From Dimorphilus gyrociliatus (lineage: Eukaryota; Animalia; Annelida), in assembly GCA_904063045.1 (NCBI GenBank), contig CAJFCJ010000118.1, positions 39,473 through 103,472 on the forward strand: a DNA stretch of 64,000 bases. The letters run 5' to 3'. The position numbers were made by a program, and so were the translations under genes. Shown here in pieces: positions 280 to 56,321 of this stretch (its first letter is position 1; each line of letters begins with the position of its first letter). The notes below the pieces were generated by a model. It was not told where the DNA came from, ran no database searches, and saw nothing but the letters and a program-made list of their open reading frames with translations.

Positions 280-3200
280 ATGGAATACGAGAATAACAAA
301 CACTTGAGAACAAACTCAGTTTCGGGGATGGAAAATGAAAAAACTTGGAGAGATTTTTCTAATGAAACAACATTTCATGGTATAAAAAATATTTTTTTAA
401 AAGAAGCATCATTGATTAGACGAATTGGATGGGTTTTAATTGTCTTGGGTGCAATTTCCTTTTTCTGTTTTCAAGTAGTAAAAAGAGGATTGGATTATGG
501 TAAACGAGATATAAATGTCAATGTTGAAGTGATATATACTAAGCAACTTGAATTTCCATCAGTTACTGTTTGCAATCAAAATAAATTCAGGTGTGAATGT
601 AGGGACATTTTAACCTAAAAGAAAAGTTTTAGGTCTAGGTTAGAGGTTTTCAAAAATACAACTCTTGCTTGAATGCTTAACAATTAAAAGAGAACACCTT
701 TAATCAAATTTAAAGCATTGCGTTTCCAAGTCATTGAAAATAATTCTTACACATTTTTCAGGATGAAAAGCGCCATTGAATTGGGTTTATATGAATATTT
801 TTCAAAGATTTATAGCTTGGACAATGGTCAAAATACTACGTTTGATGAATATTTACCCAAAAATATGAATTTTAGCATGGAATACGTTTATAACTATGCT
901 GGACATAAACAATCGGATTTTATTTTCTGGTGTAATTGGATGGATCGGCCATGTAAATCGGAATATATCACAAAAACCATTACTGAATATGGTATTTGTT
1001 TCACTTTTAATTCTCCATCTTCCGTTGATCCACCAACTTCTTTAACTGTTTCCGAACCCGGAATGAATAATGGTCTTTCTCTATTATTCAACACTGAACA
1101 ATACAATCATATGCCTGGACCAGATTTCGATGCTGGTGTGAAAATATTTTTACACGATGACTATAAAAAACCATTAATGGCGGATTTGGGCTTTGCAGTT
1201 CCAGCTGGAATGCACAGTCTCATTGGAATAAAACGAACCGAATCATATAGTCTTGGCGACCCATTTGGCAATTGTAAAAAGACAAAGTACAAATCACACG
1301 CTGAATGCAGGGATTATTGCAGATATAAAACAATAGCGAGCCTTTGCAACTGCAAACCGTACGAAGCTACCGCAATCTTAAAAGATGATGACAATGCGAA
1401 ATATTCGCAAGAAAACTGTTCTCTACCGAAGAAATATAATTGTATTGAAAGAAAATTGAGGAGATTTGAAGAAACTGATAAAAATATTCTCAATTGTTCA
1501 TGTCCAATTCCGTGTAATCAAATCATTTATGAACCAAATCTATCATTCTCAGCCATATCGGAATTTGCGGCTAATAGAGTATTAAATGCGCATAAAGAGA
1601 AAGTTGATAAATTAGAACAAGACTATTTAAAAATTATTGAAGTTGGAGAAAAATATATTAAACCAAATTTTCATCTCAATAATGAAACTATAACAGAATT
1701 TATCATAAAAATAAATCAAGTTTTAAAACAATTTAATAAAACTTTTACAGTGTTTTCAACAAATAATCAAAAACTATCAGATAGTTTACAATTTGCAACG
1801 GCAATTTCAACAGATATTCAAAATATGGAAAATAATTTTAAAAAGGTAAAAACTGCTCTCAATTCACCAAAACTCACAGAATTATCTAAATCTTTGGATT
1901 ATATGAAAAATGTTATAAGATATTTTTGGAATAGACTTTATGGCAATTTTCTAGTACATTTTGATGAAGTTGTTGAAAGTTTTCAAATTTGTAAACAAAA
2001 TATACAAAATTTGAGTAATACACCTACAGTTTGTGATGGATTTATGAAAAAATTCCAATTTGGTGATTACGAAATACATTTTAGAGATTTCAAAAGCTTT
2101 TGGATCCAAATTATAAAAGATGCAAAAATTTCATGGGCTAAATCAAGTGTTTTAACAGATTTAGAAACTTATCTAAATAATCATACTAAAGAAATTGAAA
2201 GAATATTTCAAATGGATGTTAATGATACCAGATTACCATTTAATCAAATGTGTAAACCATTCTATATCAATTCAATAAAAGCAACAAAATCAATGCAATT
2301 TCAAAATCTAAATCATAATGATAGCTATGAAAAGTTTGGTGTGAAAATTGAAATTCTACTCAATTCATTAACTATATTTAAGAGAAATATTAATGATCAA
2401 ATATTCAATTCTGTTTGTCTAATAAGTGAAAATCATGCACTTGAAAAGATTAATTCATTACTTAAACAAATAAATTCAAATATTTTAGATTTATCTTCAA
2501 ATTTTCAAGATTTTCAAAATTCAATAAAAAATAATCATGAAACTTTTAAACAAACTTTAAATGAAACTGAACAATTTGAATCATATTTGAAAATTAATTC
2601 AGAAACAAAGAAATGTTATTTATCAGATACATTCTTATTGGAAAGTTACTTGACTAATATCAAAGATTTACTATTTCTTTATGATAAAATCAATGTGGAG
2701 AAGAGAAAATTTGAAAGAAAAAGAAAAAAGATTTATAAAGAATTGATAAAAATTGAAATGTTTGTTGTCGAACAATTCTATTGGCCTTTTCCAAAAAAGA
2801 ATAAACATAATAAAGATATCATTTATCATGATTTAACAGACTTTCATTCATACTTTGCTGAAAAAAAAGAAGACTATAACATTCCTGTGAATTGTTCAAA
2901 AGAACATTTACAACAAATTCGAATTGGTAGTTGGAGTAATTGTTTTCAAAATTTTACAAAAAAAATGGAGGAATATGGTCTCGTTCTAAGCAAAAATTCT
3001 GTTCTTGATAAGATGAATATCTTATCCGCCTATGACAAACTATATAATTTCATGCATAAGTTTAAAAGTTCTTGCAAAGTAAATAAAGATTTTTTCAGGT
3101 TTGGTTTCTTTAACTTTTCTTTTTGTATTTAAATATTTTTTTTCTTTAAAATTTGAATTTTCAAAACAAACAGAAGGAATTTTGCAAAAGTTAACATTTT

Positions 3201-4362: not shown

Positions 4363-5520
4363 TTAATTAATCATATGATCAAGGAATTGGTCAAGTGTCT
4401 TCGGATAAAGAATATCATTGACATTTACAATCCAGCATTGTGATTCACCTCTCCAGACAAGTTTACTAGGAAAAACCTTATCATTTATCTTTATTGATGA
4501 TGACTGCTCAAAATTTTGAATTGTTTGGAAGAATTCAAATGATTGATTAACAGTTTGACCCATAAGACCTCCAGGTGATTTATAAGAGTTGATATGATTG
4601 ATAAAAACATCAAGATATGTACCAATCATAGAATTCTTTGAACGCTTTACAGAAAATGTATTATTCTGAATACTCTTATCATTTCTCGGAATAGAAAGAT
4701 AGAAAACATCATTCTTCAATTCAATATTTATATCTCCTCTCTTAGTATTGAAACTAACCAATTGATTATTCCATTTAATGTAGCTGCCATTCTCAAAAAA
4801 CACTTTATTAGCAGTTACTTTCAAAAGTTGATTATCAATGTAGAAATGCATTTCGTGCATATAATAATCATCCTTCAAAATTCCATAAATCTTTATTCTC
4901 TCATATTTATCTTGAAAAACATTTATTCTATTGTAAGTTGTCGAACTTACATCAAAACAAACATTTTTAAAGCTTTTGTCCTTTTTATCTTTAATGAATA
5001 GGCTAAAGTGAGGATCGCCACTTCCAGCAGGTGGATCAATAATTTGAAGTTCAATTGTACCTACAATTGTGTTGCTGAATTGATTGCAATTTAATAATGC
5101 AAATACAGTTTCACCATTTTCTGGTATGGAGTCAGTTATTATTGAAACAGTTGCTGTAGCAGTCTCCGACTCTGAGAGAGAAAAATGTTTTTGGCCTATA
5201 AATTCATAATCAGGATCCTGTGATGTCAGGCTAAAAGAGATATAAAGTATTGATATCATATGAAAATGATTTTAGTTATCTTTAATTTTTATACTCGCAA
5301 GTACTTCCTCCAGTAGCACCTGTAATTCGAATGTTAGCCAGTGTCCCCTCTTCAAAGGGACCTTGTCCTAAAAGTTCAAATGATGTTGAAAGGGCAAATC
5401 CCTCACATTCATAATCTATAGTTCAATTGTAAACTTTTTAAATAAAACTAAAAAAAATGATATAATTCACTACTTACTTAAAAAGGAAATCAAGATACAA
5501 AGTATAAAAATCTTCATCAT
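4363..5520 (-). CDS. Secreted protein A: signal peptide + Calx-beta/Ig-like module + GDPH motif + ITIH C-terminal-like domain, ~343 aa, exons 5520-5478, 5415-5295, 5230-4363
   Basis: MMKIFILCILISFL leader; DPDY..F..IITDSIPENGE (Calx-beta-like); GSGDPHFSLF..NVCFDV resembles ITIH GDPHF..LCF. Junctions keep the frame (1032 nt). Paralog at 61355-62530 has the same exon layout. Confidence 0.8.
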
Positions 5521-6315
5521 TGCCTTTCTTCTATCTTTAAGAGAGCTTTAGGCGACTTTTAAATACTTTTTTAAAAACATTTTTTTAAGCCAATAAGAAT
5601 TTTTTATGAATTATCATTGAATTGACATGTGTAATTTATTCTATTTCCTCTTTTCATGATGTGAGTGACGAGAAAATATATGAATAAAATCTGAATGTCT
5701 ATCTTTATCAGAGGTTTTCAATTGTTGAAAAGACTTTATTACCATTAGAAATGGGTGTGGTATTTAGTAGAAAAAAGATGACTAATTTCAACAATTTTGA
5801 TAGTGTTACAGTTAATGAAATCACTGTTAGCAAGGTTATATATTCTTAATAAAGAATTGTGATTATTTAGATAAGCTTCAAGCTGGAGAAAAAGACGAGA
5901 TCAGCTTCAAACTGATATTGAGTAGTGTAATTAATACAAACACTAAACCTACTTGAAGTCCTAGAATAATATAGAATCCTAATATAACTATGAATATAGT
6001 GCTTTTAAGTAATTTGTGTGTAAGATATAAGATAAAAGTTCACTAGTTTGTTATGCTAGGTTTAATCAGTGATTTTTTTCTAAAATATTAATAGCCTGAG
6101 AAGAATAGGGCCTACAATATTTTGCAAGAAATTTCTTTCATATAAGCTGCCCACGCAATTCTGCTATTATTATACTATAGATATAAAATTATAAAAGTTA
6201 GGTCAATAACCTTGTTACACAGGTTGACAATGTGAATCACTCCAATGTAACAGATCATTCAACCATTTCTTCATATATATGAACAAAATAGATATATTAA
6301 AGAGGTGTGTCCTAT

Positions 6316-6521: not shown

Positions 6522-9115
6522 GTGCCCTATACAGCCCCATCATACACTAAATTTTTTGTCAGTAGAGTTTCAAGAAAAATCTCAAGGCTGTAAACAAACA
6601 GTTAATAAACATAGACGAAATGCTGTTAAATTTGCAATCTCTGATGTCTCTGGACCATTTTCTATTGGCCAAACCAATCAAGATATTATAGCTACAAAAA
6701 CTGGTTCCAGCGACTTTGCACTTAAAAAATTAACATGTAACAATCGACTGGATATATACTATTTATCCTAAAATCCCTCCTGGTAACCCTAGCTGTCAGG
6801 CAACTGTGTTGTCCTGTTGGAAGATGTAATTCCTGCACATTTTATTGATATTTCTTCAATTTTTTGCTCTATCCTCCTTGTTTCAGATAGCAATTGAAAG
6901 AAATTTCTTAGATATAGGCTGTAAAATTTTGTTATTGTGTTTTTATAAATAGATTGATATATGGGTTAGATCAATAACCTTGTTGAATAGGTTATCAATA
7001 TTAAATATTGCCCCAGACCTACAAAAACTGATTGTGGAATCAAAAGTAAAAGGTCAATCTATAGAATGAAAACATCGAAGAGGTGTGTCATATTCAGTTA
7101 TCATTGCTTCAGATAAAACATGCTTTCAACTTGGTCTGCCCTGTTTTTCTATATGAGTTGAATATAGTATATGAGTATATTTGAAACACTACATCTTATA
7201 TTAAATAATAAGAAAGGTTGATAGATGATGATAGATGTGTGATGTCTGCATTAATAAATTAATGGATGTCAATTATTTCAATTTTATAATCCTAACATCT
7301 CTCTCTATGTTTCTCTGTCCAGTGAATATTTCCTAGATATGTTCTGTTATTTCAAGGGTTAAAAGTTCATTGTGGAGTAAAGGAAATGTATCTTTATTTT
7401 GTTTTGGGTAGAAATAGAAGACAGAACACTCAACTGCCCAAAAAAATCAGTCTTTCTCTTTCTTTAAGATCAACTTGAATGTAAATTTATTAATCAAATA
7501 TGATTTTTTTTATTGAATCTAATCTCTGTTGCAGTTATCTTTATAATATGATATTAGAGATTTATGGAAAAACTAGATTTTATAAATATTTATATATTTA
7601 TAGTAATGAAATTGGCAATAAAGTAGCATTCATGTGTGATGGACTTGTTAACTCTGTAGGTCATCCCTATCTAGGGATTGGACCCTTGTCACTTGCAGGT
7701 AAATCATTAACAACTGATAAGAGATTATATAAAAGCCAAGGTCTAGACAGCAACAAAAATTTAGAAAAAAGACAAACTACTCATGAAAACAGTGCTGAAA
7801 CAAATGTTCCGTACAACCGACTTCTTTTTCGTAATGGCTATTTTGATGGGTAATCAAAGGGATTTTTTAAGAAAAAATTTGACTCCTGTGTAGGAAATTT
7901 TGTCTAGTTTTATTAGAAATTTTCAGATGAGTCAATTCATTAAGATGGCTTGAAGTTTTTTGTCCAGTGACATTGCTTGGAGTTGGGACATTTCGTCCCT
8001 TTTGCCTGGACATTACATCCCTTTAGTATGGACATTTTTTATGATAGGTTAGTGTAACTATTTACTTTTTTGATCACTTTATCAGTTTTCTTTATGAAGT
8101 ACTATTGTCTACCAGTTTTCTCAAGACAATTTTTTACCTCTTCTTGTTTATGGAAAAGTCTTGTAAGAATATTTGATTTTTGACTTATGTGTTGAGATCT
8201 GATTAGATTAATTAGTTACATTAAATGTTTAAAATATCTGTTATCTGTAATTTGTCATTATCAGTTCCCAATATTCAATTTTCAGTTCATTCTATTGAGC
8301 CTTTACGAATTCATTTTTGTTGTTAGCAAGTCATGTCCATGTGCTCTAAACAACCTCATATTTAGCTATACTATACCAATAATCTGCTGATTATTATAAA
8401 TCTATTTATAGAATAGAATTCTGCTATGTCAACAGGAAAAAAATTAATTTTGGTAATTTCTTAAGAATTTGGTTGTCATAATAAAACATTTCCCCTTCCA
8501 GTATAGATACAAAATAAATCAAGAGTAAACAATAACTTACAAATTTATATTATTCATTATCTTTATTCTTTTGATAGACAATAATAGAAAGAGATATAGG
8601 CTTAAGAAATTTGATAAATTTAATTTGGACAAATGCCAAAAAGTCAAGTCTAAAAAAAATGAAGAAAAATTTAATCAATCAGCTAAATAAATGAAAATCA
8701 ATGCCCAAGGAATAAAGTGCAAAGCCCATATATATAGGTAATTGAAATATTTGTTTTCTAGCCTCAATGATATGCATACAAACAATAAAGAGGAAACTAG
8801 AAGAGAAACTGCAAGAGATTAAAAAATTCAAAGCTAAAATAGGTTGTTCAAAATAAAAAACCAAGAATTTCTACTTTTACTTTCACTTTGTAAAAATAAA
8901 ATGAAAAACAATAAAAACTAGGACACAGAGATTAACTCAACAAAAGAAAATTGAATCTAAATATGAGTAATGAAGTTTTGTGCAAAAATTATGCCCATTT
9001 TGTTAGTCATTCGCTTAGTAAACTATTTATAGTGTACTTTATAAAATTTGAATCGGTTGCTGTTCAATCAACATTTTAACAAATATCTTTGATGATCTTA
9101 TTGAAATTATTGAAA

Positions 9116-11130
9116 ATGGAAAAAAAAGTCTTTCATGATTCTGTGCATGGTCACATGGGTTTGTAAATTCTTTTACATAAATATGTTGGAATACACTCAG
9201 ATTGTTGTTTGGTCGCCAATAATGATTTACTCCGATAGGAGACTGTAGGAAAATAGATTTATATGGTTTTATGAAGTTCGCCACTCATACTGCTGCTCTG
9301 TGGGCTGTCTAATGCATCTGCATAGCTGTGAAGGGCGGGGCACTTGTCTAGAAATGGAATAGCTCTTAAAGTCGGAGTCATTGATTTTGGTGTCCCAGGC
9401 AATCAGTATTTTTATTTGTAGTTTTCCTGGGTTTATTGAATCCAGGTATATTGTAGATATATGTAGGTAGTAAGCAAGGTTCTTCAATTCTTTCTCATTG
9501 TCGCCTACAAGTATAAGGTTGTCTATGTAGAACTCCTAATAATTTCTTTCTTGGGATTTTTGACACTATGACCATTGACTACATATTAATAAAATATTTA
9601 TTACAACAGAATTTCATCCTCTATTGATTAAAGTCATTGACACACCTCAATTTCAACGTTTACGGCATATCAAACAACTTGGCTCATGTTTTTTGGTTTA
9701 TCCATCTGCTAATCATAGCAGTTTTGAACACAGTTTAGGAACATGCCATTTGGCAATTAAACTACTTCAATCGATTAAACAAAATGTTAATCTGGATTTA
9801 GCAATTTCAATAACAGAAAGAGACATCTTTTTAGTTTCTCTTGCTGCTCTTTGCAGAAATTTGGCAAATGCTCCTTTACTTGTAGATTTTAAAAAGAGGT
9901 TTCAAGCTGATTTCAAAGTAGATGAAAGGGAGTTATCTGTTAGAATATTTAATCAAATTATTCAAGAGAATAATTTAAGAGAAGAATTCCATAAAGCATT
10001 TGATATCTCTGATGACGACATGATATTTGTTAGAGAGCTGATTTTGCGCCGAGAAGAAACAACTAAAGAATTTATTCAACTGAATGAAGGAAAGAGAAAG
10101 TAAGATAATAAATTAGCTATCAGACTATCTAATTGAAGAAACTTAACTATTTATAGATTTCTCTATGATATTATATGGAACAAGAAAAATGGAGTAGATG
10201 TTGATATATTTGATTACATTGCAAGAGATTCCTATCATCTAGGAATTAAATCATCATTTGATCATTCTCGTTTTATCCAATTGGTAAATGTCATTGAAGA
10301 TACTAAAGATGGGATTTATAAAATATGCTTAAGAGAAAAAGTATGAGTAAATAATTTCTAGATAAAAAATTTTCCCTTCTTGTCAACTTTTATTTTTTTT
10401 ATCAAGGAAGCAAAGTGCATTTTTGAACTTTTCCATTCAAGATTACTTCTGCATGATAGAGCTTATCAGCATAAAACTTGCAAAGCTATTGCTCTTATGT
10501 AAGTGATATTAATGAATAATTATTTTAATGATTAACAAAATATAAAGATATTTTTCCTTGTTTAGGATGTATGATGCATTGATTATGGCAAAGAATAATT
10601 CAATATTTCAAATAAAGAATAGAGATGGAGAAATTAAATCTGTAAAATTATCTAAAGTATTCACAGACATTGAAGCATTTCACCAATTTACTGATGACAT
10701 ATTTTCTAGAATACTCTATTCTACAGATTCTAATTTGAAAGAGTCTCAAAAACTTTTACAGAGAATTAGGGAAAGGAAACTTTATCGTTATATTATTGAA
10801 GTACAGGCTAAGGATGATGAGGATGAAGATAAAGTAAATAAAATCCTATCTTCTTGCTTAGGTAATAAAAAGGAGTTAATTACCTGTCACAAAATTGTAT
10901 TCAATTTTGGTATGAGAGATATTAATCCTGTAAAGAATTTTCTTTTCTATGAAAAATCTGAACCAACAAAAATTTTTCATATTCAAGAAGAAAATTTTAA
11001 GCAAGTTTTACCCAAAAGTTTCCAAGAAATTAGACTAAGAGTCTATTATAAAGGAGTTGATGATGGAGAATTTCTTGAAATGAAAAATAAAATTGTTAAA
11101 AAATTGGAAAATTATGGCAAGTTAAGTTAA
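9116..11130 (+). CDS. SAMHD1-like: SAMHD1-like HD-domain protein without SAM domain, ~457 aa, 5 exons (9116-9158, 9610-10099, 10157-10340, 10407-10498, 10566-11130); HD motif degenerate
   Basis: [67 protein letters not shown]. All junctions are GT-AG and in frame (1374 nt). Confidence 0.9.
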
Positions 11131-13272
11131 ATTCATTGAAGGATACTGTTAGAATGAATCCAGTTTAACAAAGAAAAAACAACAGTATATTTACAATGCA
11201 CTTCTTATTGGTTATCAATCATAAATCTACTCTACACCAGTCTAAATAATTGCTGATATTTCAAAGACAATACTCTTTTCTTTTATTACAATGTTTGGAT
11301 GTGAAATCAACTCTTTGTCCTACTTTTATATATATTTCAAATTTTGTCTTTTTGTGAATGTTGTTTAAAAAAAATTTAATTAATCTCATTCTATTTTTTC
11401 AATAGATTATCTTTTATTTCACATAGAAATTTTAAGAAATTTTTAAAAATTTTCAAAATATAAATGAGGCCATTTCTATTTGTTCGGCAAGTATAATATA
11501 ATTCCAGTAGTTGTAAAATCATCTGCAAAAGATCTTTGTTCATAAAGTGGCAGAAGACTTTTCAAGATCCTTTGCAACTTTTGATACCATCTTTAAAAAC
11601 AGATGTGGATTAGCAGGGGATTTTTACTTCATTAACACTTATTAAACACTTTATTCGTGTCATACTCCTTTTCATCTTCTCTACGTCTATGGTCTTCCTA
11701 TAGGGAACGGGTAAAATGAAACTTCTTCCATAAGACAATTGCAAGTTGTTGTAGATATTTTATAATACAATCAAGTTTTGTAATAAAAACTGAAATTTTG
11801 ATAATGACAAATTCATAAATACATATATTCTTTTCAAATTTGTAATATTTTCTCTTGAATGGAATCCGTAACCACAACATTAATCAATAATCTTTAACTA
11901 TAGACTATATTACTACTGGAATAATCTTTAGATTGGAACAACTTCGGGATGGTTGTTTGCTCCTCTGCTAATGGAACAGTAGCTCCATCTGTTGGTCTTG
12001 ATTATTATTAACAGGCAGAATTACTCAATTTTGCATACTGTAGTTGATAGCAATAAAAGATGAGAGTAAAATGTTGCCATAGTCACAATGACTAAACTTT
12101 GAAATGTGTCAATATAATCCCTTACTGACCATTACTGACTATTTTGCAATAGTGTTGTTTATACAATATAAAATATATAATGTTCATTTCAAAATGCATC
12201 TTTTCTAGATTTGGTGTGCAAAGCTATAAATTTAGATTTTACTTTTTCTTCAATGAAATTGGATAATCTTTTTGAACAAAAATCTAAAGCATCCTTGTCA
12301 TTTTTGAGAGAATCTTCTATTTCAGCAAAACTTCCAGATATTTCCATGGCCTCAGCCAAAATCAAAAAATACATCATTATGTTTTTAAAAGAAAGACCAT
12401 GTCTTTTGAATATAAGTCCAATACAATTATGATTGAGTATTATACATGGCTCACAGCACGCAGAAATTAAGCCTACATCCTTATTTATGAAAGGAGTGTA
12501 CTAAAGATTACTAAAGGGTTTCAGTTGTTTCCTAATACAATCCTAAAAATGTTGAAAATTTAGCAGTCAGCTAAAGAGTATCAAAAAGTCAAACTTGACT
12601 ATCGGTGATTTTTGGACTACTTCAAATTCTAACATTCAATGGCTGAATTGAATGTTACCAAAATAACTATGCCACTGGTTGATGTGCATTAATTGTGTTA
12701 AAATCTAGTACTCAGCTGTTTTATCAGCTATACTTTGTTATATTTTAATTGTTTTGTTTTTGTTTCAACCAAATTTGCCTTTAATATATCACCTAACCTT
12801 GACATTCATCTTTTCTGTGTTCTTTGTTTCTTTGTTAATTCCATACACCTTTGTGAATAGATTTTCAAGACATATGGGCCTAATAGACACTCCCATATAG
12901 GTTATTGTCAAATCCAAATGTTTATGTAAGAAAGTGTCTATTAAACCTTATCTCTTGAAAATCTATTCAGTATCCTGTCCTTTGAAGAATCTCATACTAA
13001 CTGACATTATTTGGGTGAATACCTGACTATGAAGATTTATGGAAAAAAGACAAATATTTTAGAATTTTGTTCAATTTTGTCAAACGTCTTGAAATCTGAT
13101 GGAGAATTATCATTAAAGAAAAAATGTTAAATGGTGAAAGAACTTTTATTCAAGGAGTTGTCCAGACAAAAGATTCCAATGAAAACTTAACTTCAATGCT
13201 TATATTTTTACATGCTGATTTATTAATATGTAACTTGAAATGTTAGATATAAAATGCAAAATGTATTTCAGG

Positions 13273-21100: not shown

Positions 21101-24100
21101 AGGGTTTACGATTGTTTTTCTGGCGAAGATGAGCAGGATTGCCTATTGGGAGAAAGATTCTTTTGCTCCTCAAACATCAGTATAGCCTATCAGTTTGTAT
21201 GTGATTTTATTCAAGATTGTCCTGATGGTCTAGACGAAAGAAATTGCGGTAAATGGATTTCTTTGTATTTGTATAACTCAAAATATTTATCGTCAATTTA
21301 CAATAAAACTACTTTTTCTTTTTAAATTACAAGAATGGAATGAATGCGAAAAAGGACAACATCAGTTAGTTTGTCAACTTAGATAAAGTGTTTTTAAGTT
21401 ACCATTTCTATAATCTATTCATAGATGCCAGAATCATCAATGTATCGGTAATGATCTTTATTGCAATAATGAATTTAATTGCTTTGACGGAAGTGACGAA
21501 AATTGCATGTCATTTATTGCGTCGAATGGAAAGAAACAAAGTATAATAAAAAAAATGGCTTTAATTATTTTGCTTTTAACGCAAAAAACGTTCACAAATC
21601 GAAGCGGAAGATTGTAATTGATTTGTATTTAGCAGGGAGGGAGATGGGTGGGGCGAAGAGTGTCAGGGTTAGGAAGATAACATTCTTTTGTGAACGTTTT
21701 CTATATTGTATACAAATACTTTTTTATCATCAAAATACACTTTTCACATCAATAGAATGTCGAAGTGATTTTCAGATGGAATGTGATGATAAATGTCTTC
21801 CTGATCAATACGCTTGTGATTTTCAGTTAAATTGTCTAAGCGAAATTGACGAATCATTCACACAATGCATGCATACATTTTCACATGATTATAGAAACTG
21901 TAATGCGAGAAAGTTGCTTATGAAAAGAAAATCTTACAAGTGTCACCTAAAATATAGTTCAATGGGCGATATTTTAACAAAACCTCAATCACCATTTAAT
22001 GAATTATTCGATTGTAAAAGATTTCAATGCGAAATCGGGGAATACAGCTGTAAAAAATTCAAATATTGTATATCAATTCAACAAGTTTGTGATGGTATTG
22101 TGCATTGTTTATATCAGGATGATGAAGTCAATTGTGGTAAGTTCTGAGAACCAAAAATTGAGGTCAATAAATAATTTCTCTTACCATCCAGATCAATACT
22201 TTAAACCAAAAGGTTATTTCAAATGCAAATACGATGTCGATTATATAAAACTGGAAAATGTTTGTGATGGTATCATTCATTGTAGAGTTGGAAGTGATGA
22301 ATTATATTGCGACACTGTGTTCAAATGTCCTCTGCATTGTCAATGTTCTTTAAATTATATTGTAATATGCTCATTTTCTAATTGGGAAGAATCATTTAAA
22401 TATTTAAATGATCTATCATTAAATTACAAAGCACTCTCTCTAAACGGCTCAAATGGTCGAAATAATGATGGAAAGTTCGTAGAACGAAAAACGATCAAAG
22501 TACAATTATCAATAAGCTATTTACACATCAATAATTACAATATTGAAAATATATCACTTTCTTCAACATTCCCAAATGTATTTTCAATGAATTTACAATC
22601 AAATAAACTAAACTTGAACAAAACTTTAGACAGCAAATTAAAAAATTTACAATCAATTAATTTGAAATTTAGCAAATTCAATATTAACCAATTTTTTACA
22701 TTTGGTCATCACAAACAGCTTAGATCCATTGATTTATCTTCAACTAATATCAAATTTTTTGGTAAAACTTTATTCTTAAATCTTAATAAATTGGAAAGTT
22801 TAAAAATTGAAAATTGTAATATTAAACTTATATGGAAAGGAATATTTGATTCTTTAAAATTTCTAAAATATTTATCACTAAGGAGGACAAAAATTCCATT
22901 AGAAGATGGAATATATTTGGTTAAACCATTAATAAATTTAAATGAATTGTATAGTAATTATTTTACACTGTGCTGCTTTGCTTGGAAATATTTGAGTAGA
23001 ATAATAAACTGTTCACCGGAGAAATCACTTTTTAACTCTTGTTCAGATTTATTCAAGTCAACAGCAATTCGAATAATACTATGGTTCATATGTTTTTTGG
23101 CCATAATTCAAAATGCTACTTCATTGATTTTTATTACGATTTTTGCATCTAAAAAAGTCAACGTCTTTCATTTTACACTTATGCTCGCTGATTTTGGAGT
23201 GGCAGTCTATGTGTTTATCATTGGATGGCAAGATCTTAAATATAGAGGTCATTACATTGAAAATGATATTACTTGGAGAAACAGCTTAACTTGTTCAACT
23301 CTAGGTGTAATTTGCAGTTGGGCAATGTTGCTGTCAGCTTTCAGTTTACTTTTAATTTCACTTGAGAGATTTCAAATGATTTTATATCCATTTCAAAAAA
23401 TTTTTGGAAGAAGAACATCTATAATTTGTATTGTAGCTATAGCTATACTTACTGGATTAATTTCCATTGTGCCTACTATTTTTTACCAAGTGAATAATTT
23501 TTAAATATTTAAAAATGAGATAGATAAATTAAGTTTTTCTTTTCTTTTTTTTAAGCAATTCTACTCAAGATATCCAGTCTGCTTTTCTCTGCATATAACA
23601 AGTGAGAAGAGTGAAGGCTGGCTATTTTCATTTATACTATATGGTATTGTAATTTCTGTTATTTGCATTGTTATTTTGCTGCTATATTTAGCAATTTGGA
23701 GAAGAACTCTAAAAGCTAAACATTTAATGGGAGAAGAAAAATTCCATACTACCCAAAAAAAATTGTTTCTTAATACTTTCCTTATTGTTTCAACAAATAT
23801 ATGTTGCTCATTTCCAATTTCAATATTAGGTTATTTTTCTACTTTTCTTATTACGTGAAGAAGAAGCGTGATAAAATATTCATCAATGAATTTTCTGGTA
23901 TTCCCCTATACCCCAAAAACTTAAACTATTGCCTGGTTCTTAGTGGAAAAAATGTCTCTAAAATCAGATTGTTGTAGATCAGAGTATGGGAAAATTGTCC
24001 AATGGGTGGGGGAAAACATTGTAGGAGTGGGAAAAGATATTTCGTGGATAAAAACTTGTCCTAATCTCTGAGATTCAAAAATATAAATGAATTTGTATAT

Positions 24101-29915: not shown

Positions 29916-32900
29916 TCACACATGGGTCCCATCCAAGTACCATACCAAGTCATCTCTTATCAGCATCTTTTCCAAATGATCAGCATATTCACCCATTTCT
30001 GCATTTGAAATTTCTAAACCTTCTAATTTATCTACTACTTTCATCAGTTCCAAATCTTTAGCTTGTTCTTGTGGAAAATTCATTGTGATTTCACCATCTT
30101 CAATTTCATTGCCATTCTCATTTTCGTCATTACTATCTATATCCTCAAACTCTTCTGCATCTAGGAAATTACATGAAATTATGTCTTTTCTTTGCATAAG
30201 TTGTGTTGCAGACTCTTCAGCCTTTTTACTGTACTCAAATTAAGTTTTCTTTGAACAAATGTTTGAACCAAACTTTGGTGGTCAGTATATAAGAAGAACT
30301 TCTTGTATCTTAGGTAATGTGAAAACTTCTGTGTTGCCCAATAAACAGCAAAAGCTTCTTTTTGATATGCAGCATACTTGAGCTGTGAATTGATAAGTAA
30401 TTTTGATGCAAATGAAACTGGTCTCTTGGTTTTCTTTCCATCAGCTCCAACAGTTTCTTGCTCTAAGATAGCTCCAACTGCAAAGTCAGATGCATCAGTG
30501 GTAAGGTAGAAAGGTTTGTTATAATCAGGTAGCTGTAGGATTGGAGGTGTTATCATTGCTCTCTTGAGGGTATCAAAGGCTTCTTCTGCTTCCTTAGTCC
30601 AGTTGAGTTTGCTGTTTTTACCATGTTCCTTTATCAAATTTCGTAGAGGTTTGGTAATTCTTGCAAAGTCTTTAATAAACCTTCTATAATATCCACAAAA
30701 TGCAACAAAACTGAGTAATGTATTTGCAAATACAGGTTTGTTTGCTTCTTTGATCCTAGCAATTTTCTCTGGATTGGTAGCAATTCCATCTTTACTTATT
30801 CTGTGTCCAAGGAATTGAATTGATTCCTGAAGAAAGTTACATTTGCTCAGCTTGATTCTAAAATCTATTCTCTTGATTTGTTCCAGCACTTTTGTCAAAG
30901 CTACTTTATGCTCCTCTAGAGTGTTGGTAAATATGATAATATCATCCATATAATTGAGGCAGAATTTATCCAATCCATTTAAAACAAATGTTGCCATAAC
31001 ATAGCTGAAGTGAGGTGGGGCATTTGCTAACCCAAATGGCATTCTATTAAACTCAAAGAGGCCAAATGGTGTTATAAATGCTGTTTTCTCTTTATCTGCT
31101 TCTTTAATTTTGATGCGGTGATAAGCACTTGTGAGGTCGAGTACAGAGAAATATTTATTTTCTCCTCCTAGCTGATCAAATAAATCTTCTTGATGAGGGA
31201 GTGGATACCTGTTTTTCTTAGTCTGCTTGTTTAGTTTTCTATAATCAACACAAAGTCTTTGCGTTCCTTCTTTCTTTTGTACAAACAGAATAGGAGATGC
31301 CCATTCACTTTTACTTATTCTAATAATTCCACTGTTCAGTAAGTCATTAACTAGCTTTTTACATTCATCCATTTTCACTGGAGGTAATCTGTATGGTCTT
31401 TGCTTGAATGGAGTGGCTTCTTCACAAAGATCAATTGAGAGAGGTGGTACATCAGGTGTGCCAATATCTGTTTGATCTTTAGCCATAATCTCTTCAAATT
31501 CTTCAACAATAGTCATCAACTTTCTTCTTTCTTTTTCAATTCTGGTTAATTCCACTGCCTTGTCTGAATTCTTTTCATTTCTGATCATTCTAACAGCAAA
31601 TTTCTTCTTGCTTCTTTTTTTCTTCTTTTCTTCTGTTCTTCCTCCAGCTCCATGAAAGGATTTCACATGTAATTCTTCTTTTGCATCTTTACCATTCCAT
31701 ATGAAAAAGGGGAGGGATGCAGTTTTTGTTGCAAAGTCCAATCTTGCACCACTTTTTGTCAGAAAATCACATCCAAGTACAATTGACAAATCCAGATCCT
31801 TTACTACAATGAATTCCTGTTCCAGAATCTTACCAGCAAACTAAATATTCAATTTACAGTGTCCAAGTGTGTTTAGTCTTGTGCCATCAGCTGTTGTAAA
31901 ACATGGTGACCCAGGGGGTAATTCCATCTGTACCTTATCACCTAACAGCTGTATTTCCTTTTCTGTAATGAAGGACATGAGAGTACCTGAATCACACAGA
32001 GCCAAAGTTTCTCTCCCTTTTGGATTCACAAATCTAAATATGAAGTCATTTCTTCCCTTAACTTGAGAAGTACATCGAAAATGATACTTTATTTCTTGTC
32101 CCACATGATATATTGCAACTGTTCCAGCTGTATTTTCGCCATCTGATGGTTTGTCAGGTTTCTCAAAACTGATTCTGTGGAGGGTTGACTTTGATTCAGC
32201 TCTCCTGTTTCCATGATGGTTTCTACCATATCTTGGATTGTAACCTCTATTCTCTGGATTACTGTGTCTGTGTTGTGGAGGATTATAAGTCTTCCAATCA
32301 TTTTTCTTCCAATATTGTTCCTCTTTTTCCTCTATTCGTAGACTACTAAGATATGCTTCAGCTTCTTTTGCCAAATTTAGATACTGTTTTGCATTGTCAA
32401 TATTCCTGTGTTGTTCCACATGGTTGACTATATCAGCTCTCAGGCCAGATCTCAAGGTGTTTAATAACTGTATTTCTCTTATCCTTTCAATCACAGCAGG
32501 CTGATCATTTGCATTTCCAGGCAAGAATTTCTCAATAAGATCACTTGCTCTCCCAGCAAAACTTGTTACAGTTTCACCAGTTAATTGCTTCAACCTTTCA
32601 ACATCTCTTTTATAGATAATAGAGGGAGGGTTAAACTCAAAGTCTAAAGTTCCCCATATATCTTTTTCTGATGCTTCAGGAGGAAGTCTTTCAACAACCA
32701 GTCTAGCTTTATCTACAGTGTACTTTCTTAACATTTGTATTCTTTTTGCTTCAGTATTCCATGAACTTATTTCTGCAGCTGTTCTGAAATTCCTTTTAAA
32801 ATTCCAGGTGTCCTCTCTTCCAGAATATGGTTTCAACAATGTAGTATTTGGTCTTTCACCAGCATCCAAAAGTAAATTTGCCATGGTATGTTCCAATTCA

Positions 32901-41000: not shown

Positions 41001-44000
41001 AGAAATTGTCTTCTTTTTAAATAATTTGTGTTTAACATTGAAAAATACATTTTCAGGTAATTACTGTTTGCCAAATCAGTGGTAATTTCTCCATTTTTTT
41101 GTTGATAAACTAACATTTACTTGTCGTAAAAACCATACTAAGGAAATGCAATAATGGTAAATGCGTGAATCTAACACAACTATGCGACAATGAAAGAAAT
41201 TGTATTGATTTCACTGATGAAATGTGCTATGAAAATAGTAACATTTATCAAAATATTTTTGGAACAAGTATACAAAAAAAAGAGTTCAATTGACTTTTCA
41301 ATATTTCATATGAATTATCTTCATTTAGAATGTAACAATGCAACTCAATTTGAATGTCCAGAGAAATGTATACCAAACTTTCAAATGTGCGATTTCAGAG
41401 CTAACTGCTTTAATGGTGAAGATGAAAATTATGATCTATGCAAAAATATAAGATGTAAAAAAGCTTCTGAAGTTCATAAAGCATGTACAATTGAGTACAC
41501 TTCAATGGGAATTTTAAAAGAATCATTTCACAATTCATTGACATTAACGGCTGATTGTAATAAAGTAAAATGTAGACAAGGAGAATATTTATGCAAATTG
41601 CACAAATATTGCATATCAATTGAGCAATATTGTGACCATATTGTTGACTGTTATCTCGGAGATGACGAATATGATTGTGGTCTCTAGACAATTATTTTTT
41701 TTAATAAAATAATTTTATTTTTGAGTTAACCTATTGATTTCTGATAGAAAATTTTTTTGGTGAAGGATTTTTCAAATGCAGAAAACAGAGATTGTTCTTG
41801 AACTCTACAAAAATTTGCAATGGTATTGTGGATTGTCAATATGGAAGCGACGAAGAACTTTGCACAAATCTTCATTATCCATTTAATAATTGTCAAACAA
41901 GCGATTTTCAAGATATAAAATGCATTAATTTAACTGACATTTCATTAATAGGAAGATCCTTTATGAAAATTATCATTAACAATTTTAATCATATTTTAAA
42001 AGATATTCAATACAAACACTTCTCTGTGAATTACCTAGAAATTACTCATTCAATAATACTTTCTGAAAATTTTCTAATGAATTTTCCAAATGTAGTGTCT
42101 TTAACACTGAAATATATAAATAATTCATTTCAAATGCTCACCTATTTGAAACCATTAAAATTATTACAAAATTTGGATGTATCTTTTAATCATATAGATA
42201 ATTTATCTTTTTTAAAAGAATTCCAATCAATCAATTTAAGATATTTGGATATTTCTCATACAAAGATAACACAACTTTTCAGAGTGGATTTTAAGAATTT
42301 TATAAAACTTGAAACTTTAAAAATAACCCATTGCAATTTAAATACTTTGGATATTGGTTCAGTGAATTTTTTAAGTAGTTTGAGAGAATTTCATTTAAAT
42401 AATACTAGATATCCATATTTACAAATGGAAACTACTGTTCAAAAGTTTCAAAAACTTGAAAAATTCTTCTCGCCTAGTTATTTAGTTTGTTGTATTATAT
42501 GGAAATATTTGAGAAAAATTAAAGTTTGCTATCCAACTAAATCACTTTTTAAGAGTTGTACAAAAATGTTAAAATTTACATATGTTTCAATTATTTTATG
42601 GATTTATGGAATATTTGGTTTTCTGGGAAATTTTTTGGCACTTTTACATTTAATAATTCATGTAAAGACTGGTAAAACATTTAGATTAATGTTATCATTT
42701 GGAGATATCCTGACATCATTTTATGTCTTAATAATCAGTTGTATTAATGTATATTTTGGTGAGAATTATGTTGACAATGACTATCAATGGAGAAATAGTG
42801 TGTTCTGTAATTTTCTTGGTTCTGTAATGACTTTTTCTCTCATCCTCTCAGTTGGCAGTGTTACTTTAGTAACTATGGAGAGACATTCATCAATTTTTAA
42901 GCCTTTTCTGGCAAAAACTCGCCAAAAACAAATATATATTGTAGCAATAGGTTTCTTCATTTCTGCTCTTGTAATTACAATGCTGCCAGTTTTAGTTTAT
43001 GAGGTATGAATTGAATTTTGGGATGATGTTGAAAATATCCATGTTAGAGCTTTTAGCTTATTCTCTCCAATCCCTTCTCGAGATTCACCCAAATGCAAAT
43101 AGTTCACTTTACACCCAAAATATCCCAAAATGGATATTTTCAATAGCTCATTCCCAAAAAATTTATTTACAGACTTAGTGGTTCATAAAAATGTTTACCA
43201 ACTATCTTTTTTGAAAGAAATATTACTCAACCACACCAGTTTGCTTTAATGTTTATATTAGAAGTACTAAAATGGAAGGGTGGATCTTTTCATTTCTGCT
43301 ATTTAGCATTTATCCACTGTTGAGTTGTATTCTTATACTTGTGTTGTATATTGATATTTTTCAGAGAGTGTTGAAATCTGGTAAACAATTTCAAAATCAA
43401 AATTTAAAAAATTACAAAAAGTTGGGTGGGAAAGCCTTTTTCATTATTTTCACAAATGTTACAAGTTGGTTACCATTTTCAATATTAGGTAAATTTCTTT
43501 TGTGCTTTTCAAATGTGTTTCATAAAGTTGATTAAATTTTAAGGAGTTATTTCAATGAATGGGAATTTTCATCTAAGTGACACTTTATATATCATTATAA
43601 CCTTATTAATTATTCCATTAAACTCTTTAATAAATCCATATATTTATTCTATTTTTTTAAGCTTCAACTTATTTAGAAAAAGAAAATATAAAGAACTTTT
43701 AAAACAGTTGGTGAAGAAGATACAATAATATTTCTTATTCTAATATTGTGCCTTGATTTTAGGAAAATTTTGTTGGAACATACTACTGATCAACTATATG
43801 AAACTTGTAAATATTTTTTAAACAATCTCTTATAGGACAATTTTGATATAAGGTCAAGGGTACTAAGGAACAGTTATAGAAATTTCAATTTTCCTATACT
43901 TAAAAATGGCTCCTTAGAACTTTTGCAATTCTTATCTCATAATTATGGTGCGATCGCAATATTGTAGACGCTTTGTATTTTTAACTATAACAATTAACTA

Positions 44001-46180: not shown

Positions 46181-48497
46181 TCAGGCTATAAGCTGTTTTC
46201 TTTCTTTCATAATATGTTTTAAAAATTCTCCAAAGGCAAGAATATCCTGTTTTTCAAACTTGCTTGAAAAATTTTCATATTCTAAATTGTCCACAACATA
46301 ACTATTCTTTTTACCCTTTTAAGCAAAAATGTTTTAAGTAATTTGTATTAGTGCATTTAATTAAAAAGTAAAATGCTTTAATCAACCTCAACAATTGAAA
46401 TGTGATTTTTCAAGACTTTTATATTTCCACAAAGTTTATAGTTATGAAGCAAAGCTAAATTTTTAATTGTTTCCAAACAGCAATAGAAATATTCATAATT
46501 TTTAAAAAACTTGTAATTTATATTAACTTTTCTGAATTTTTCCATTGAAAACATATGCATTTGATAATTTATAATGGCCATAACTGAAAAAAAAGGCAAT
46601 TTTGTATTAATTTCACAGCTTTCTCTTTACCTTTCTCAATTTTTTCATTCATCATTCTTTCTATAAAATTTTGTCTAAAAGTTTATAATTGTTAAATAAA
46701 GTACAAGATAAAAATAGACATACTTCATTATTCTCTTTCTGGCCTTTTCAAAGCTTAAAATTCTAAACATATCCTCTGTTGCATAAATGTATGGATTGAT
46801 AACAGGATTTATTGGAACTAAAAAGCCAACAATTAGAGTGTAGGTGTTATTATTTACATTAAACTTGAAAAATATTGATAAAAGAGCTATTTAAATAAAC
46901 AAAAATTGACTTTTTTTGATCAGTTTAATGACAAAATAGACCTAGTAAAAAAATTGGTGTGCAGCAAGCAATGTTTGAAATTGATAGAACATAAATGCTT
47001 GTAGAAATGCGTTTGTTCGAGATAATTTTATTTTTTGCTGGTAATCTTGATTTTTTAACAGTGAAATATACTTTAATATACAAGGACAGAATTATGATAC
47101 TAATAATCATTGAAAATATTCCATATATCATAAAAGAATAAATCCATCCTTGGGTTCTATCATTTCCAATATAGATATTTAAACAAATTGGAACTTTGGA
47201 GTAATAATCCTACAAAAGTCTTTGATGTAAAAAAATATACAATATTAACTTTATGTACTTGAAAAAATATCAAAGGTGTGAGAGCAACAATAAATGAAAA
47301 TAGACAAATGCCAAAAATGATATGTAAAGTATAATTTTTCATCAGGCTCCTCTGAAGAGGATATAGAACAACTTGATATCTTTCAATTGATATTGCCAAT
47401 ATACTCAACAATGAAAACGTCAATGAAAATGACATGATTGTGCCAAGAGTTTTACAAAATGGACTGTATCTCCATATCTCTTCTTTTTCCAGATATTCTT
47501 CACTGTGAAATTGACTATCAACTATACAAATAGAAAATAGATGGATATTTGATAACAAGTCACCAATAAGTAAACAAAATCTATAAGATCTAGAAGTTTT
47601 TTTCTTCTGTGTAATTATTATATAAATTCCTAAAAGATTTCCAAATAACCCAATACTTGAAAAACACCAACTTGAAATTTTTTGATAATTTGAAGACAAA
47701 ACACTATTGCAATTAATGAAATATGGTTTTTCAGGTGAACATAATAAATTCATCATTGAAAATTTTTCTAAAAAACAACAAATTTGAAAATTTTCTGTTA
47801 TTGCAACACTTAAATATTTCATATTTTTGAATAAATGAATTATGTTTTTAAATGGAAGAGTAGTGTCATTCAAATATAAATATTTCAAATATTTAAAATG
47901 GAAAAAACTTTTTTTTTCCAAATTATTTATTTTACTCTTTGATAGAATTAGAGTTTTTAGAAGAGTAAATTTTCTAAAATGAGATTCCCGTAGATAATCA
48001 ATATTTATGTGAGAGATATCTAATATCAATATATTTTTTGTATTAAATTTCTGTAGAAAGTCAATTGTTTCCAAGAAATTGAAAGACAGATTTAAATTTT
48101 GAAGTAAAGGAAGATGAATATCTTTTGGAGTTAAAAGATTGAATAGTAAATTATTAGCTAGAGAAAATGTTACTAAATTTGGAAAGTTAAATGATGATAG
48201 TGTTAAATTTTCAAGAGCATAGTTTTTTTCTATTTTAAAAATTACAAGATTTCTCGAATGAAATGATCCTTGCCACGTAAAATTTCCCTCAAATATAGAT
48301 TTCTTGGTGTATTTCACAATTTCTGTTGGTAGTAACAACTGTTTAGTAGTTTTGCATATTTGTTCATATTGAAATGTATAAGTGCATGGGTCAAATAGGT
48401 TCTTTATTTTTTTTCCATTACAGAATATTTCATCAGAACTTTCTTTACAATCAATCATATCATTACATACTTTATCATGAAAAATATAATAATTTTC
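46181..48497 (-). CDS. LGR3: 5'-truncated GRL101-like GPCR (last LDLa, LRRs, 7TM, kinase-like tail)
   Basis: CNDMIDCKESSDEIFC, LRRs, ISIERY, PINPVINPYIY. Tail exons 46583-46387 and 46315-46181 splice in frame. An LTR abuts at 48498. Confidence 0.8.
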
Positions 48498-48760
48498 TGT
48501 ACTTTGTTGTATTGTAATTGTAGGAATTTCTGGTTCGTCACAACTGTAATCGTCCTTTCCAATCATTTACCAACTTGCCAAAGTACTGGTCCAAATAGAA
48601 CCTTTAAAGTTCGTCCACAAATAGTCTAACAAAGGCAATTTCGGTAGAAATTGATTAACAAAACACCAGTATTTCGTCCAAAGAATATGTATTGAGTAAA
48701 ATGAGCTTCTAGTTCTAAACAAGCTAGTTTAAACAACTAGCTGACGGTTAGAAAACTGAA
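48498..48760 (-). mobile_element. LTR3-family R/U5 segment abutting LGR3 (gap follows)
   Basis: Reverse complement of ~57450-57708; ends in GTACA. Confidence 0.85.
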
Positions 48761-55300: not shown

Positions 55301-56261
55301 TTTGGACTTTTTGGCTTGAAAACTTTTCTTTAGTACCATTTTTGTTGTCAGGTACATGCTTTCTATTCCAAAAATTTGGGGTTTCTGTAGAAGCATCTTT
55401 TCTGATTACCTGGGTCTTTTTGGTCTCTTTTCTTTGTTGAGTTTCCAATTTTGACACCATTGTGATCAGTTTTCTTTGAGTTAGTTTTAATGAAGTTTCT
55501 GCTTGCTTAGCAGCCTCATATAGTTCTCCCAATGTTTGACATTTAGGATGTAAGGTGTACACTAAATGTAGAATATCCTGTTGTAATCCTCTTTGTAAAA
55601 CTTCCATCAGTTTTATTTCTTTCATAGTTGCAAGCAATTGTGGTTCCATTGGTCTAGGTGGAGAAAACCTCTTTATCAATTTCTTTGCTCTATTAACAAA
55701 CTGAACCACACTTTCGCCATTCATTTGCTTTAAGTTAAGCAATTTCTCTTGATACTCCAAAGGATCCAGATCAAATTCGTCATGGAGGGCTTTCCATATT
55801 TCCTCCACAGTAGGCTCTCCATCCAGAGCCAACACCAAATCCTTTGCAGGACCAGTTAAATAATCTAAAAGATTTGCTTTCACAACATCTTCTCCTATCC
55901 AACCATAAGCATAACATGCCTGATTAAAGTCTTTTTTGAATTTTGAACACTCCTTGCTTCCATCATACAACTTGAGAATAGTTCTTTGAGGGCGGTCCCA
56001 AGCAGCCCTTAATGCTTGAATTACTGTTGTGATATCAACATTTGGGTTCTGAGCTGGGTGATGTGTTCCATCTCCATGATCTGTTGGAATTGTGATTCGA
56101 TTTCTTTTCATTTCACTCACCAATCTATCATAGTCTTCAATTAGTCTTTGTTGCCTTTCTGACATTCCTGCTGGCTGAATTGTAATTGTTGGAGTTGCTG
56201 GGGTTGAAGGGTTACAGTCTGTAACTGCCCCAGTGGCATTTCCAATTCCTCCTTCTGCCAT
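52356..56261 (-). mobile_element. Ty3/Gypsy element 2 internal region (single-frame gag-PR-RT, RNaseH, integrase C-terminus; IN core deleted)
   Basis: MAEGG start, LIDSG, YLDD, frameshift near 53900, TDAS/YTDH, GDRV..WSGPY (GPY/F module). Confidence 0.93.
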
Positions 56262-56299
56262 ATTTACTTTCTCAAAACTTTTGAATAAACCAAAAGAAT

Positions 56300-56317: not shown

Positions 56318-56321
56318 AATT

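Follow-up and report, generated by a model that had tools for sequence, protein, structure and literature searches.

In this study, a gene of the annelid Dimorphilus gyrociliatus was found that probably encodes a working SAMHD1 paralogue without hydrolytic activity, kept by selection, with a role as a binder or regulator. It lies on the forward strand at positions 9116-11130 of the window, the whole 64,000-nucleotide stretch of DNA that was analysed, and is a SAMHD1-type gene of five exons and 457 codons (1374 nt). Of its 10 catalytic positions, 8 have lost the essential residue, although the homologue is otherwise intact. Our verdict, drawn from sequence comparison, is that the gene should be regarded as a pseudoenzyme and not as a pseudogene. 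A preliminary description made from the DNA letters had proposed that selection keeps the fold and the nucleotide sites, and not hydrolysis; the paralogues, the dN/dS values, the transcripts and the contig sequence over the motif now support this proposal.

The intact five-exon frame with canonical splice sites given in that description was recovered in the gene model, in which all donors and acceptors, when re-read, were GT..AG and the frame ended at a TAA stop (11128-11130). Given the base composition (29.5% GC), a codon would be a stop with a probability of 7.7%, and the chance of 457 open codons is about 1e-16. The features of the locus are as follows (human residue numbering).

8016-8047, forward strand: alternative upstream exon (its 3' end), with donor GT at 8048; joined to 9610 in one contig
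9116-9158, forward strand: exon 1 of the gene model, ATG at 9116
9159-9609, forward strand: intron 1 (phase 1, 451 nt); an alternative acceptor, at 9238, is also used
9610-10099, forward strand: exon 2, with the A1 guanine pocket, the degenerate HSSFEH and LCRNLANAPLL motifs and the helical lobe
9714-9731, forward strand: H-S-S-F-E-H, replacing the canonical H-N-R-F-E-H; H167 kept, R164 changed to S
9852-9881, forward strand: C-R-N-L-A-N-A-P-L-L, replacing C-H-D-L-G-H-G-P-F-S
10157-10340, forward strand: exon 3; D311 kept, K312 changed to I; Y315, D319, D330, R333, R352 and K354 kept
10407-10498, forward strand: exon 4; R366, H370, R372, Y374, Q375, H376 and K377 kept, N358 changed to C
10566-11130, forward strand: exon 5, C-terminal lobe, with R451 and K523 retained and a TAA stop (11128-11130)
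11131 to at least 11600, forward strand: 3' untranslated region, from an unspliced X1 contig that runs from 11032 to past 11600

Exon 1 carries the equivalents of K116, V117, N119 (here H), D120, H123 and H125. Expression, a point raised by the preliminary description, was examined with contigs of one public run (X1, of a type not recorded as RNA), and their joints fall exactly at each of the four predicted introns. One contig joins 9158 to 9610 (recorded joint 9157 to 9609, GT..AG, cut +1), joins of 10099 to 10157 and of 10340 to 10407 are likewise found, and the junction of exons 4 and 5 is spelled by loose ends at 10499 and 10562; contigs span 10562-11052 and 11032-11600. No letter differs between these contigs and the window over 8600-11600, and the motif in this independent run reads AGA-AAT, not CAT-GAT. 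The gene is transcribed and spliced as predicted, as seen in this single run whose type is not recorded as RNA. At intron 1 the joints skip either 451 nt or 80 nt. The upstream exon was placed from a 149-letter loose end before 9608, the last 30 letters of which are unique to 8016-8045; the form that carries it is without exon 1, its sole in-frame start would give M-I-E-F-H-P-L-L, and its reading frame, when checked, encodes no domain. Intron 1 was not found as a dispersed repeat, and its origin as a transposon fragment was rejected, with only one weak 57-nt match elsewhere.

Database searches were performed exon by exon, while the alignment, dN/dS and trees used the joined 457-aa model. Against solved SAMHD1 chains in the PDB (phmmer), exon 2 matched about human 128-275 (E 7e-28), exon 3 about 296-354 (E 9e-15) and exon 5 about 405-560 (E 3e-19); exon 4 matched about 356-383 (E 5e-4 to 6e-3). 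Exons 2-5 are thus collinear with the SAMHD1 HD domain and C-terminal lobe, the identity with primate SAMHD1 is about 38% over the core, and in the tree the gene falls among animal SAMHD1 sequences. Exon 2 is matched best in the PDB by chains of the H206R/D207N mutant, because these chains read LCRNLGHGPF. Searches of the exon pieces against Pfam gave sub-threshold chance matches only and no HD domain, an outcome that says little because the pieces are short and the motif is destroyed. The SAM domain is absent, as first described, and the protein begins 2 residues before the K116 equivalent; however, a SAM domain is likewise missing from both canonical Dimorphilus copies and from many proteins named "SAMHD1-like", so this absence does not discriminate.

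Residues were mapped on the 626-aa SAMHD1 of Pongo, whose residues at 167, 206, 207, 311, 137, 142, 145 and 451 (H, H, D, D, D, Q, R and R) are as in human numbering. The map bears out the residue losses and retentions first described. The replacements are H206R (AGA, 9855-9857), D207N (AAT, 9858-9860), H210N, H215V (the codon right after CRNLANAPLL), R164S, D218K and K312I, and the H233 equivalent is not kept, its place being taken by E in some alignments and by a gap in others; the D218 and H233 losses are additions to the earlier list. Within the metal-binding tetrad, H167 and D311 are kept and H206 and D207 are not, while the catalytic shell and triphosphate contacts R164, H210, H215, D218, H233 and K312 are all gone (S, N, V, K, E or gap, and I). 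D137, Q142, R145 and R451 are kept, as are Q149, D311, Y315, D319, R366, H370 and Y374. In the human enzyme, H206R/D207N abolishes metal binding and activity, yet crystals of the mutant still contain tetramers with bound nucleotide, and H210A and H233A each disrupt catalysis (PMC7045340).

The search for a separate active paralogue, suggested at the outset, revealed a tandem pair of canonical HD copies on contig 7, with the motifs HNRFEH and LCHDLGHGP(F/L)SH intact. A second intact copy with the RN dyad (RN copy) lies on contig 95; the gene model made here for it is identical to the annotated DgyrCDS14884 (P0002). It is 63% identical to the window copy and carries the motif LCRNLANAPLL, identical in protein with 2 synonymous differences. 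The window copy is the fourth intact SAMHD1 family member in the genome, which is new here. A third RN copy, on contig 70, has the same motif and 82% DNA identity with the window copy, but has decayed through stops, a frameshift and a deletion of about 437 nt; it serves as a neutral comparator and an example of decay. In the tree, the two intact RN copies are paired with 100/100 support and are sister to the canonical copy C7b at 100/98, on a long stem (1.2). They evolve about 3 times faster than C7b, indicating that constraint on them is relaxed. No other protein with RN..ANAPL was found in an exhaustive representative search or in word searches with the sister protein and exon 2; the window product is itself absent from this large protein database, so that this negative result counts for little, whereas DgyrCDS14884 is publicly annotated. 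The RN subfamily is best explained as Dimorphilus-specific and derived from the canonical contig-7 "b" type. In an exon-2 tree with Logan contigs of a relative, the order of RN origin and split is a trichotomy (AU p 0.45).

The pairing of the window copy with the contig-95 copy, new here, provides a direct test of selection. Between the two, dN is 0.23 and dS about 1.0, and dN/dS, which the preliminary description had left to be computed, is clearly below 1: 0.22 by ML/YN00 and 0.40 by NG86 (bootstrap 0.30-0.51; the highest of 200 resamples is 0.58). Private amino-acid changes number 35 and 39 (p 0.73), so that the lineages evolve at equal rates. Neither lineage is neutral, because the average dN/dS is too low to include one neutral lineage. 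Purifying selection acted after the catalytic loss, since both compared copies carry it. These values bear on the reading that the gene is a functionless transcribed relic, a young unprocessed pseudogene in which a stop has not yet been acquired. The decay of the contig-70 copy, the faster evolution of the RN copies relative to the canonical copy, the absence of the product from the protein database and the alternative 5' splice forms, which are probably unproductive, would fit such a relic. However, dN/dS is 0.22-0.40 at dS of about 1 with both lineages equal in rate, 457 codons are open although a random frame would be interrupted about every 13 codons, all splice sites are intact and used, and changes have avoided the binding sites. 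We consider this reading very improbable, and an unprocessed pseudogene was rejected on the lack of stops and frameshifts, the intact splice sites, dN/dS below 1 and equal rates.

At the sequence level, site A1 (K116, V117, D137, Q142, R145 and R451) is identical in the window copy at all 6 positions. In site A2, scored at N119, V156, F157, D330, R333, R352, K354, N358, R372, H376, K377 and K523, 10 of 12 positions are kept or conservatively changed. The exceptions are N119H, found in the window copy only, and N358C, common to both RN copies; F157Y is the same change as in the canonical Dimorphilus copies. Both RN copies retain the base and sugar contacts Q149, L150, Y315, D319, R366, H370, Y374 and Q375. 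Both RN copies are altered at 8 of 10 catalytic positions, compared with 2 of 28 in A1, A2 and the substrate contacts (Fisher p 4e-5), and the binding sites are conserved above the protein background (p 2e-4). One A1 segment of 16 residues has the same sequence in both RN copies and in C7b. This invariance reflects selection and not gene conversion, which was rejected because 6-9 synonymous differences are present.

Since H167 and D311 remain, a weak or altered metal site may persist in the RN protein. The protein may even still be an enzyme, with a remodelled pocket that carries out a different or metal-independent reaction or acts on another nucleotide-like substrate: the pocket would contain R206, N207, N210 and K218 with H167 and D311, next to base and sugar contacts conserved in both RN copies, and LCRNLANAPLL is invariant in three RN copies, suggesting constraint on the new pocket. 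This is improbable, as H206R/D207N suffices to abolish human activity, H210A and H233A disrupt catalysis (PMC7045340), six more catalytic-shell residues are lost, the exon pieces have no HD match and the sister RN protein DgyrCDS14884 is recorded without a Pfam HD domain. As for binding in the old substrate pocket, the kept base and sugar contacts may be relics, because human H210A loses the nucleotide from the catalytic pocket.

The reading that we prefer is a non-hydrolytic binder or regulator. After dismantling of the metal-binding and catalytic shell, dNTP hydrolysis would be lost, whereas the A1/A2 pockets may still bind either GTP/dGTP and dNTPs or single-stranded nucleic acid containing G, and the protein may oligomerise through them like engineered human H206R/D207N. 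Because hydrolysis is probably lost while A1/A2 binding and oligomerisation are predicted to persist, we propose for the RN protein a role as a binder or regulator that responds to nucleotides or nucleic acids. In human SAMHD1, the A1 residues D137/Q142/R145/R451 bind G of oligonucleotides, and restriction requires H376, R352 and K523, whereas dNTP depletion does not (PMC7854603); all of these are kept in the window copy. As a speculative variant, the RN protein might co-assemble with the two canonical copies and tune their activity, acting as a regulatory subunit that would contribute allosteric-site residues to mixed tetramers, together with dead active sites, and would so damp or retune dNTP hydrolysis. 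This sub-case, which is counted within the preferred explanation, is somewhat unlikely. It agrees with the retention of the A1/A2 residues, whose ligands are contacted in SAMHD1 by residues from three subunits (PMC7854603), with an exon-4 helix identical to that of C7b at 25 of 31 positions against 53% overall, with the presence of canonical partners in the same genome, and with the precedent for dead-paralogue regulation in the AdoMetDC prozyme. However, two diverged RN copies kept together suggest more than simple damping.

The locus was first described as a retroelement-rich region, which is only loosely true: reverse-transcriptase ORFs are present in the window, but the nearest (30179-31789 and 53778-56396) are at least 19 kb from the gene, and the region is flanked by host genes for DEG/ENaC channels and LGR-type GPCRs. 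The retroelement context was rejected as a functional clue.

The hydrolysis-independent roles of SAMHD1, including nucleic-acid binding, antiviral restriction, DNA repair and immune signalling, are disputed, and the usual means of probing them is an engineered dead mutant, for example H206R/D207N. In Dimorphilus, evolution has repeated this engineered dyad change, stripped the catalytic shell and, by purifying selection, conserved the allosteric pockets in two diverged copies, which coexist with normal enzymes in an animal that has a very small genome and is cultured in the laboratory. We tentatively suggest that animals may have made non-catalytic SAMHD1 sensors repeatedly, at least four times (Dimorphilus, caenogastropods, hygrophilan snails and cyprinid fish), and that the RN proteins could serve as separation-of-function alleles. 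If so, the retained pockets would be for binding guanine nucleotides and dNTPs or G-containing single-stranded nucleic acid, and the RN proteins would carry the much-debated dNTPase-independent activities: they might bind nucleic acid, restrict retroelements or viruses, or control the canonical enzymes by mixed tetramers. Together with the independent paralogues of snails and carp-like fish, the RN proteins offer natural material on what the regulatory pockets do alone, and indicate that automated "SAMHD1-like dNTPase" names are probably wrong for a recurrent protein class.

Among the closest known systems is DgyrCDS14884, which shares with the window copy the five-exon structure, the intron phases, H-(S/T)-S-F-E-H, LCRNLANAPLL and the kept pockets; unlike the window copy, it keeps N119 and has K312R instead of I and H215A instead of V. 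The canonical contig-7 copies (DgyrCDS6560, P0151, and its tandem neighbour) are similar to the RN copies in fold, length and the absence of a SAM domain, and C7b also in exon structure (53% identity, the closest canonical relatives); in contrast, their catalytic residues are all present, and so is the Pfam HD domain. The AdoMetDC prozyme of Trypanosoma brucei, reportedly a paralogue without catalytic activity that controls the active enzyme by hetero-oligomerisation, resembles the RN protein, by analogy only, as a dead paralogue retained beside active copies. However, the RN protein has an unrelated fold and pathway, and its interaction with a partner is conjectural. The human H206R/D207N mutant (for example PDB 4TNP and 4ZWE; 6BRK for the mouse equivalent) has the same HD-dyad substitutions, but the window protein has also lost R164, H210, H215, D218, H233 and K312, has neither the SAM domain nor the C-terminal T592 region, and uses the codons AGA AAT, which are no simple step from CAT GAT. 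HD-less SAMHD1-like paralogues also occur in gastropods (RG in Batillaria; RG, FN and YN in Physella; LS in Lymnaea) and in cyprinid fish (YN), where some are fused to beta/gamma-crystallin domains; a literature search for natural dead SAMHD1 paralogues, these included, found nothing relevant. As in the RN copies, other residues stand in place of their HD dyad, and A1 (D137/Q142/R145/R451) and most of A2 are retained; however, the replacement residues differ, most keep R164 and H210, and none has ANAPL. In the tree, the gastropod and cyprinid paralogues have origins independent of the Dimorphilus RN copies, a convergence that is new here.

Re-reading of the window sequence bore out the preliminary description of a five-exon open frame with canonical splice sites: all introns of the gene are GT..AG, and the frame runs for 457 codons. 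The G+C content of the window is 29.5%, so that a stop is expected about every 13 codons in a random frame, and the chance of a 457-codon open frame in this composition is ~1e-16. Searches were made exon by exon; the joined 457-aa model, built from the window, was used for alignments, dN/dS, and trees only. Exons 2, 3, 4, and 5 matched solved SAMHD1 chains collinearly. The top PDB matches of exon 2 were crystallisation mutants engineered to H206R/D207N, since L-C-R-N-L is what the window gene naturally encodes there.

Exons of the window gene and the evidence for each
9116-9158, plus strand: exon 1, from the window reading
9610-10099, plus strand: exon 2, PDB SAMHD1 chains, E 7e-28
10157-10340, plus strand: exon 3, PDB SAMHD1 chains, E 9e-15
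10407-10498, plus strand: exon 4, PDB SAMHD1 chains, E 5e-4 to 6e-3
10566-11130, plus strand: exon 5, with a TAA stop at 11128-11130, PDB SAMHD1 chains, E 3e-19

For the residue map, the model was aligned to a Pongo SAMHD1 of 626 aa, in which the landmark residues fall at the human positions. R164S, H206R, D207N, H210N, H215V, D218K, and K312I are the losses in the window copy; H233 is not kept either, its place being taken by E or by a gap according to the alignment. Of the four metal ligands, two (H167 and D311) remain, as do the base and sugar contacts Q149, L150, Y315, D319, R366, H370, Y374, and Q375. The guanine-specific allosteric site A1 is complete (K116, V117, D137, Q142, R145, and R451). 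The second allosteric site, A2, is kept at V156, F157(Y), D330, R333, R352, K354, R372, H376, K377, and K523, the exceptions being N119H and N358C. Every residue that the preliminary description had listed as lost or kept holds in this alignment. The reported absence of a SAM domain from the gene model was also confirmed, but the canonical copies of the same genome have none either.

Exons 2 and 5 were searched against the 77.9-Mb assembly in six frames, and gene modelling then gave the whole family. The search revealed a separate paralogue of the active type: contig 7 carries two canonical copies in tandem, one of them DgyrCDS6560, with HNRFEH and LCHDLGHGP(F/L)SH intact. The first canonical copy has two alternative 92-nt versions of exon 4 (5380-5471 and 5618-5709 of its locus, L016), which encode the R366-K377 helix and differ at the H370/Q375 equivalents (F/H versus Y/C). 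Contig 95 holds a second intact copy with RN in place of HD, 449 aa long, with five exons and phases as in the window copy; its model is identical to DgyrCDS14884. A reverse-oriented, 99.86%-identical duplicate of this locus (L015) at contig 163 1-5821 (L018) is probably a haplotig and thus no extra gene copy. A further RN copy lies on the minus strand of contig 70 (140537-141454; L017), with 82% DNA identity to the window gene, intron 2 included; it has an exon 2 frameshift, several stops, and a ~437-nt internal deletion, and exon 1 is not detectable in it. The window copy is thus the fourth intact family member, and the contig-70 copy is a decayed fifth, which provides a neutral reference for the intact RN copies. 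In a protein database of 5.8 billion clusters, the 63%-identical contig-95 sister is present, and the 457-aa window product is absent among that sister's matches; the public annotation therefore appears to lack or mis-model the window gene. None of six other ORFs recorded in the window adjoins it.

Other ORFs in the window
718-3132: DEG/ENaC channel
21999-23504: LRR-plus-7TM (LGR-type) receptor
30179-31789, minus strand: LTR-retroelement reverse transcriptase
41792-43009: LRR-plus-7TM (LGR-type) receptor
47160-48566, minus strand: LRR-plus-7TM (LGR-type) receptor
53778-56396, minus strand: LTR-retroelement reverse transcriptase

The two intact RN copies have these losses in common, so the divergence between them measures evolution after catalytic loss. 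Maximum likelihood and YN00 gave dN 0.23, dS 1.0, and dN/dS 0.22; the NG86 ratio was 0.40 (bootstrap interval 0.30-0.51; maximum 0.58 in 200 resamples). Values of 0.22-0.40 are not near 1, and one neutral lineage cannot be reconciled with so low an average. Private amino-acid changes, polarised with the canonical contig-7 copy closest to the RN pair (C7b), numbered 35 in one copy and 39 in the other (p 0.73). Changes had occurred at 8 of 10 catalytic positions versus 2 of 28 allosteric and substrate-contact positions (Fisher p 4e-5), and conservation of the binding positions exceeded the protein background (p 2e-4). Both RN copies and C7b share an identical A1 segment, [16 protein letters not shown], with 6-9 synonymous differences among them within 48 nt, which exclude gene conversion as the cause of the identity. 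The motif LCRNLANAPLL is invariant across the three RN copies (window, contig 95, and contig 70). The low dN/dS, the conserved binding positions, and the changed catalytic positions support the earlier reading that selection keeps the fold and nucleotide-binding sites, not hydrolysis.

In the IQ-TREE phylogeny, the four Dimorphilus copies form a single clade (support 100/100), with C7b as sister of the RN pair (100/98). The RN pair sits on a long stem (1.2 changes per site), and its terminal branches (0.55 and 0.74) are similar in length to the entire C7b branch (0.57); the RN lineage has therefore evolved ~3x faster than the canonical copy, yet is still constrained. Tandem orthologues of both canonical copies occur in Logan contigs from a relative of Dimorphilus (SRR23372228/29/31 and SRR31984834; L019-L022), whose exon 2 shows 77% identity to C7b and dS above 2. 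No RN-type exon-2 ORF from this relative was found in the protein database. The exon-2 tree does not separate the order of the RN origin and the split from the relative (AU p 0.45); the window/contig-95 duplication (dS about 1) postdates that split.

Of the sampled words, 85% are present in X1, a public run of 2017 whose type is unrecorded. Contigs of X1 show exact joints at 9158|9610, 10099|10157, and 10340|10407, and their loose ends spell the exon 4/exon 5 junction. Since the six-frame search with exons 2 and 5 found no intron-less copy in the assembly, these joints indicate RNA spliced at the predicted introns, and the gene is expressed. No letter differences from the window were seen in X1 contigs over 8600-11600; the motif therefore reads AGA-AAT, not CAT-GAT, in independent data. 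Two minor splice forms also appear in X1: one uses an alternative intron 1 acceptor at 9238, and the other joins an upstream exon (3' end 8016-8047) to 9610, skipping exon 1. The sole in-frame start of the latter gives M-I-E-F..., with the K116-H125 equivalents lost.

In an exhaustive search with exon 2, the HD dyad is also missing from several further proteins among the 150 best cluster representatives (P0026, P0079, P0081, P0091, P0103, P0121, P0021, P0006, P0067, and P0134). Cyprinid fish proteins have YN in its place, some with fused beta/gamma-crystallin domains; among gastropods, Batillaria has RG, Physella RG, FN, or YN, and Lymnaea LS. The fish and gastropod proteins have independent origins in the IQ-TREE tree and keep A1 and most of A2, while 206/207 and often 311 are lost; they carry public dNTPase names. 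The RN..ANAPL form occurs in none of these other HD-less proteins, and the literature searches turned up no account of naturally dead SAMHD1 paralogues.

The window product is predicted, with high confidence, to have lost catalysis; H210A and H233A are known to disrupt it (PMC7045340). The A1 pocket D137/Q142/R145/R451 also recognises G of single-stranded oligonucleotides, and H376, R352, and K523 are required for retroviral restriction and dispensable for dNTP depletion (PMC7854603). All of these binding residues are kept in the window copy, and a non-hydrolytic, ligand-binding, oligomerising protein is therefore proposed. Such a product would bind guanine nucleotides and dNTPs in the A1/A2 pockets, or alternatively G-containing single-stranded nucleic acid; it would also oligomerise, possibly in a mixed assembly of the RN protein with canonical copies. 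In sum, the sequence data support the window gene as a probable natural pseudoenzyme branch of SAMHD1, an enzyme in whose human form H206R/D207N removes both metal coordination and activity but still permits nucleotide binding and formation of the tetramer (PMC7045340).
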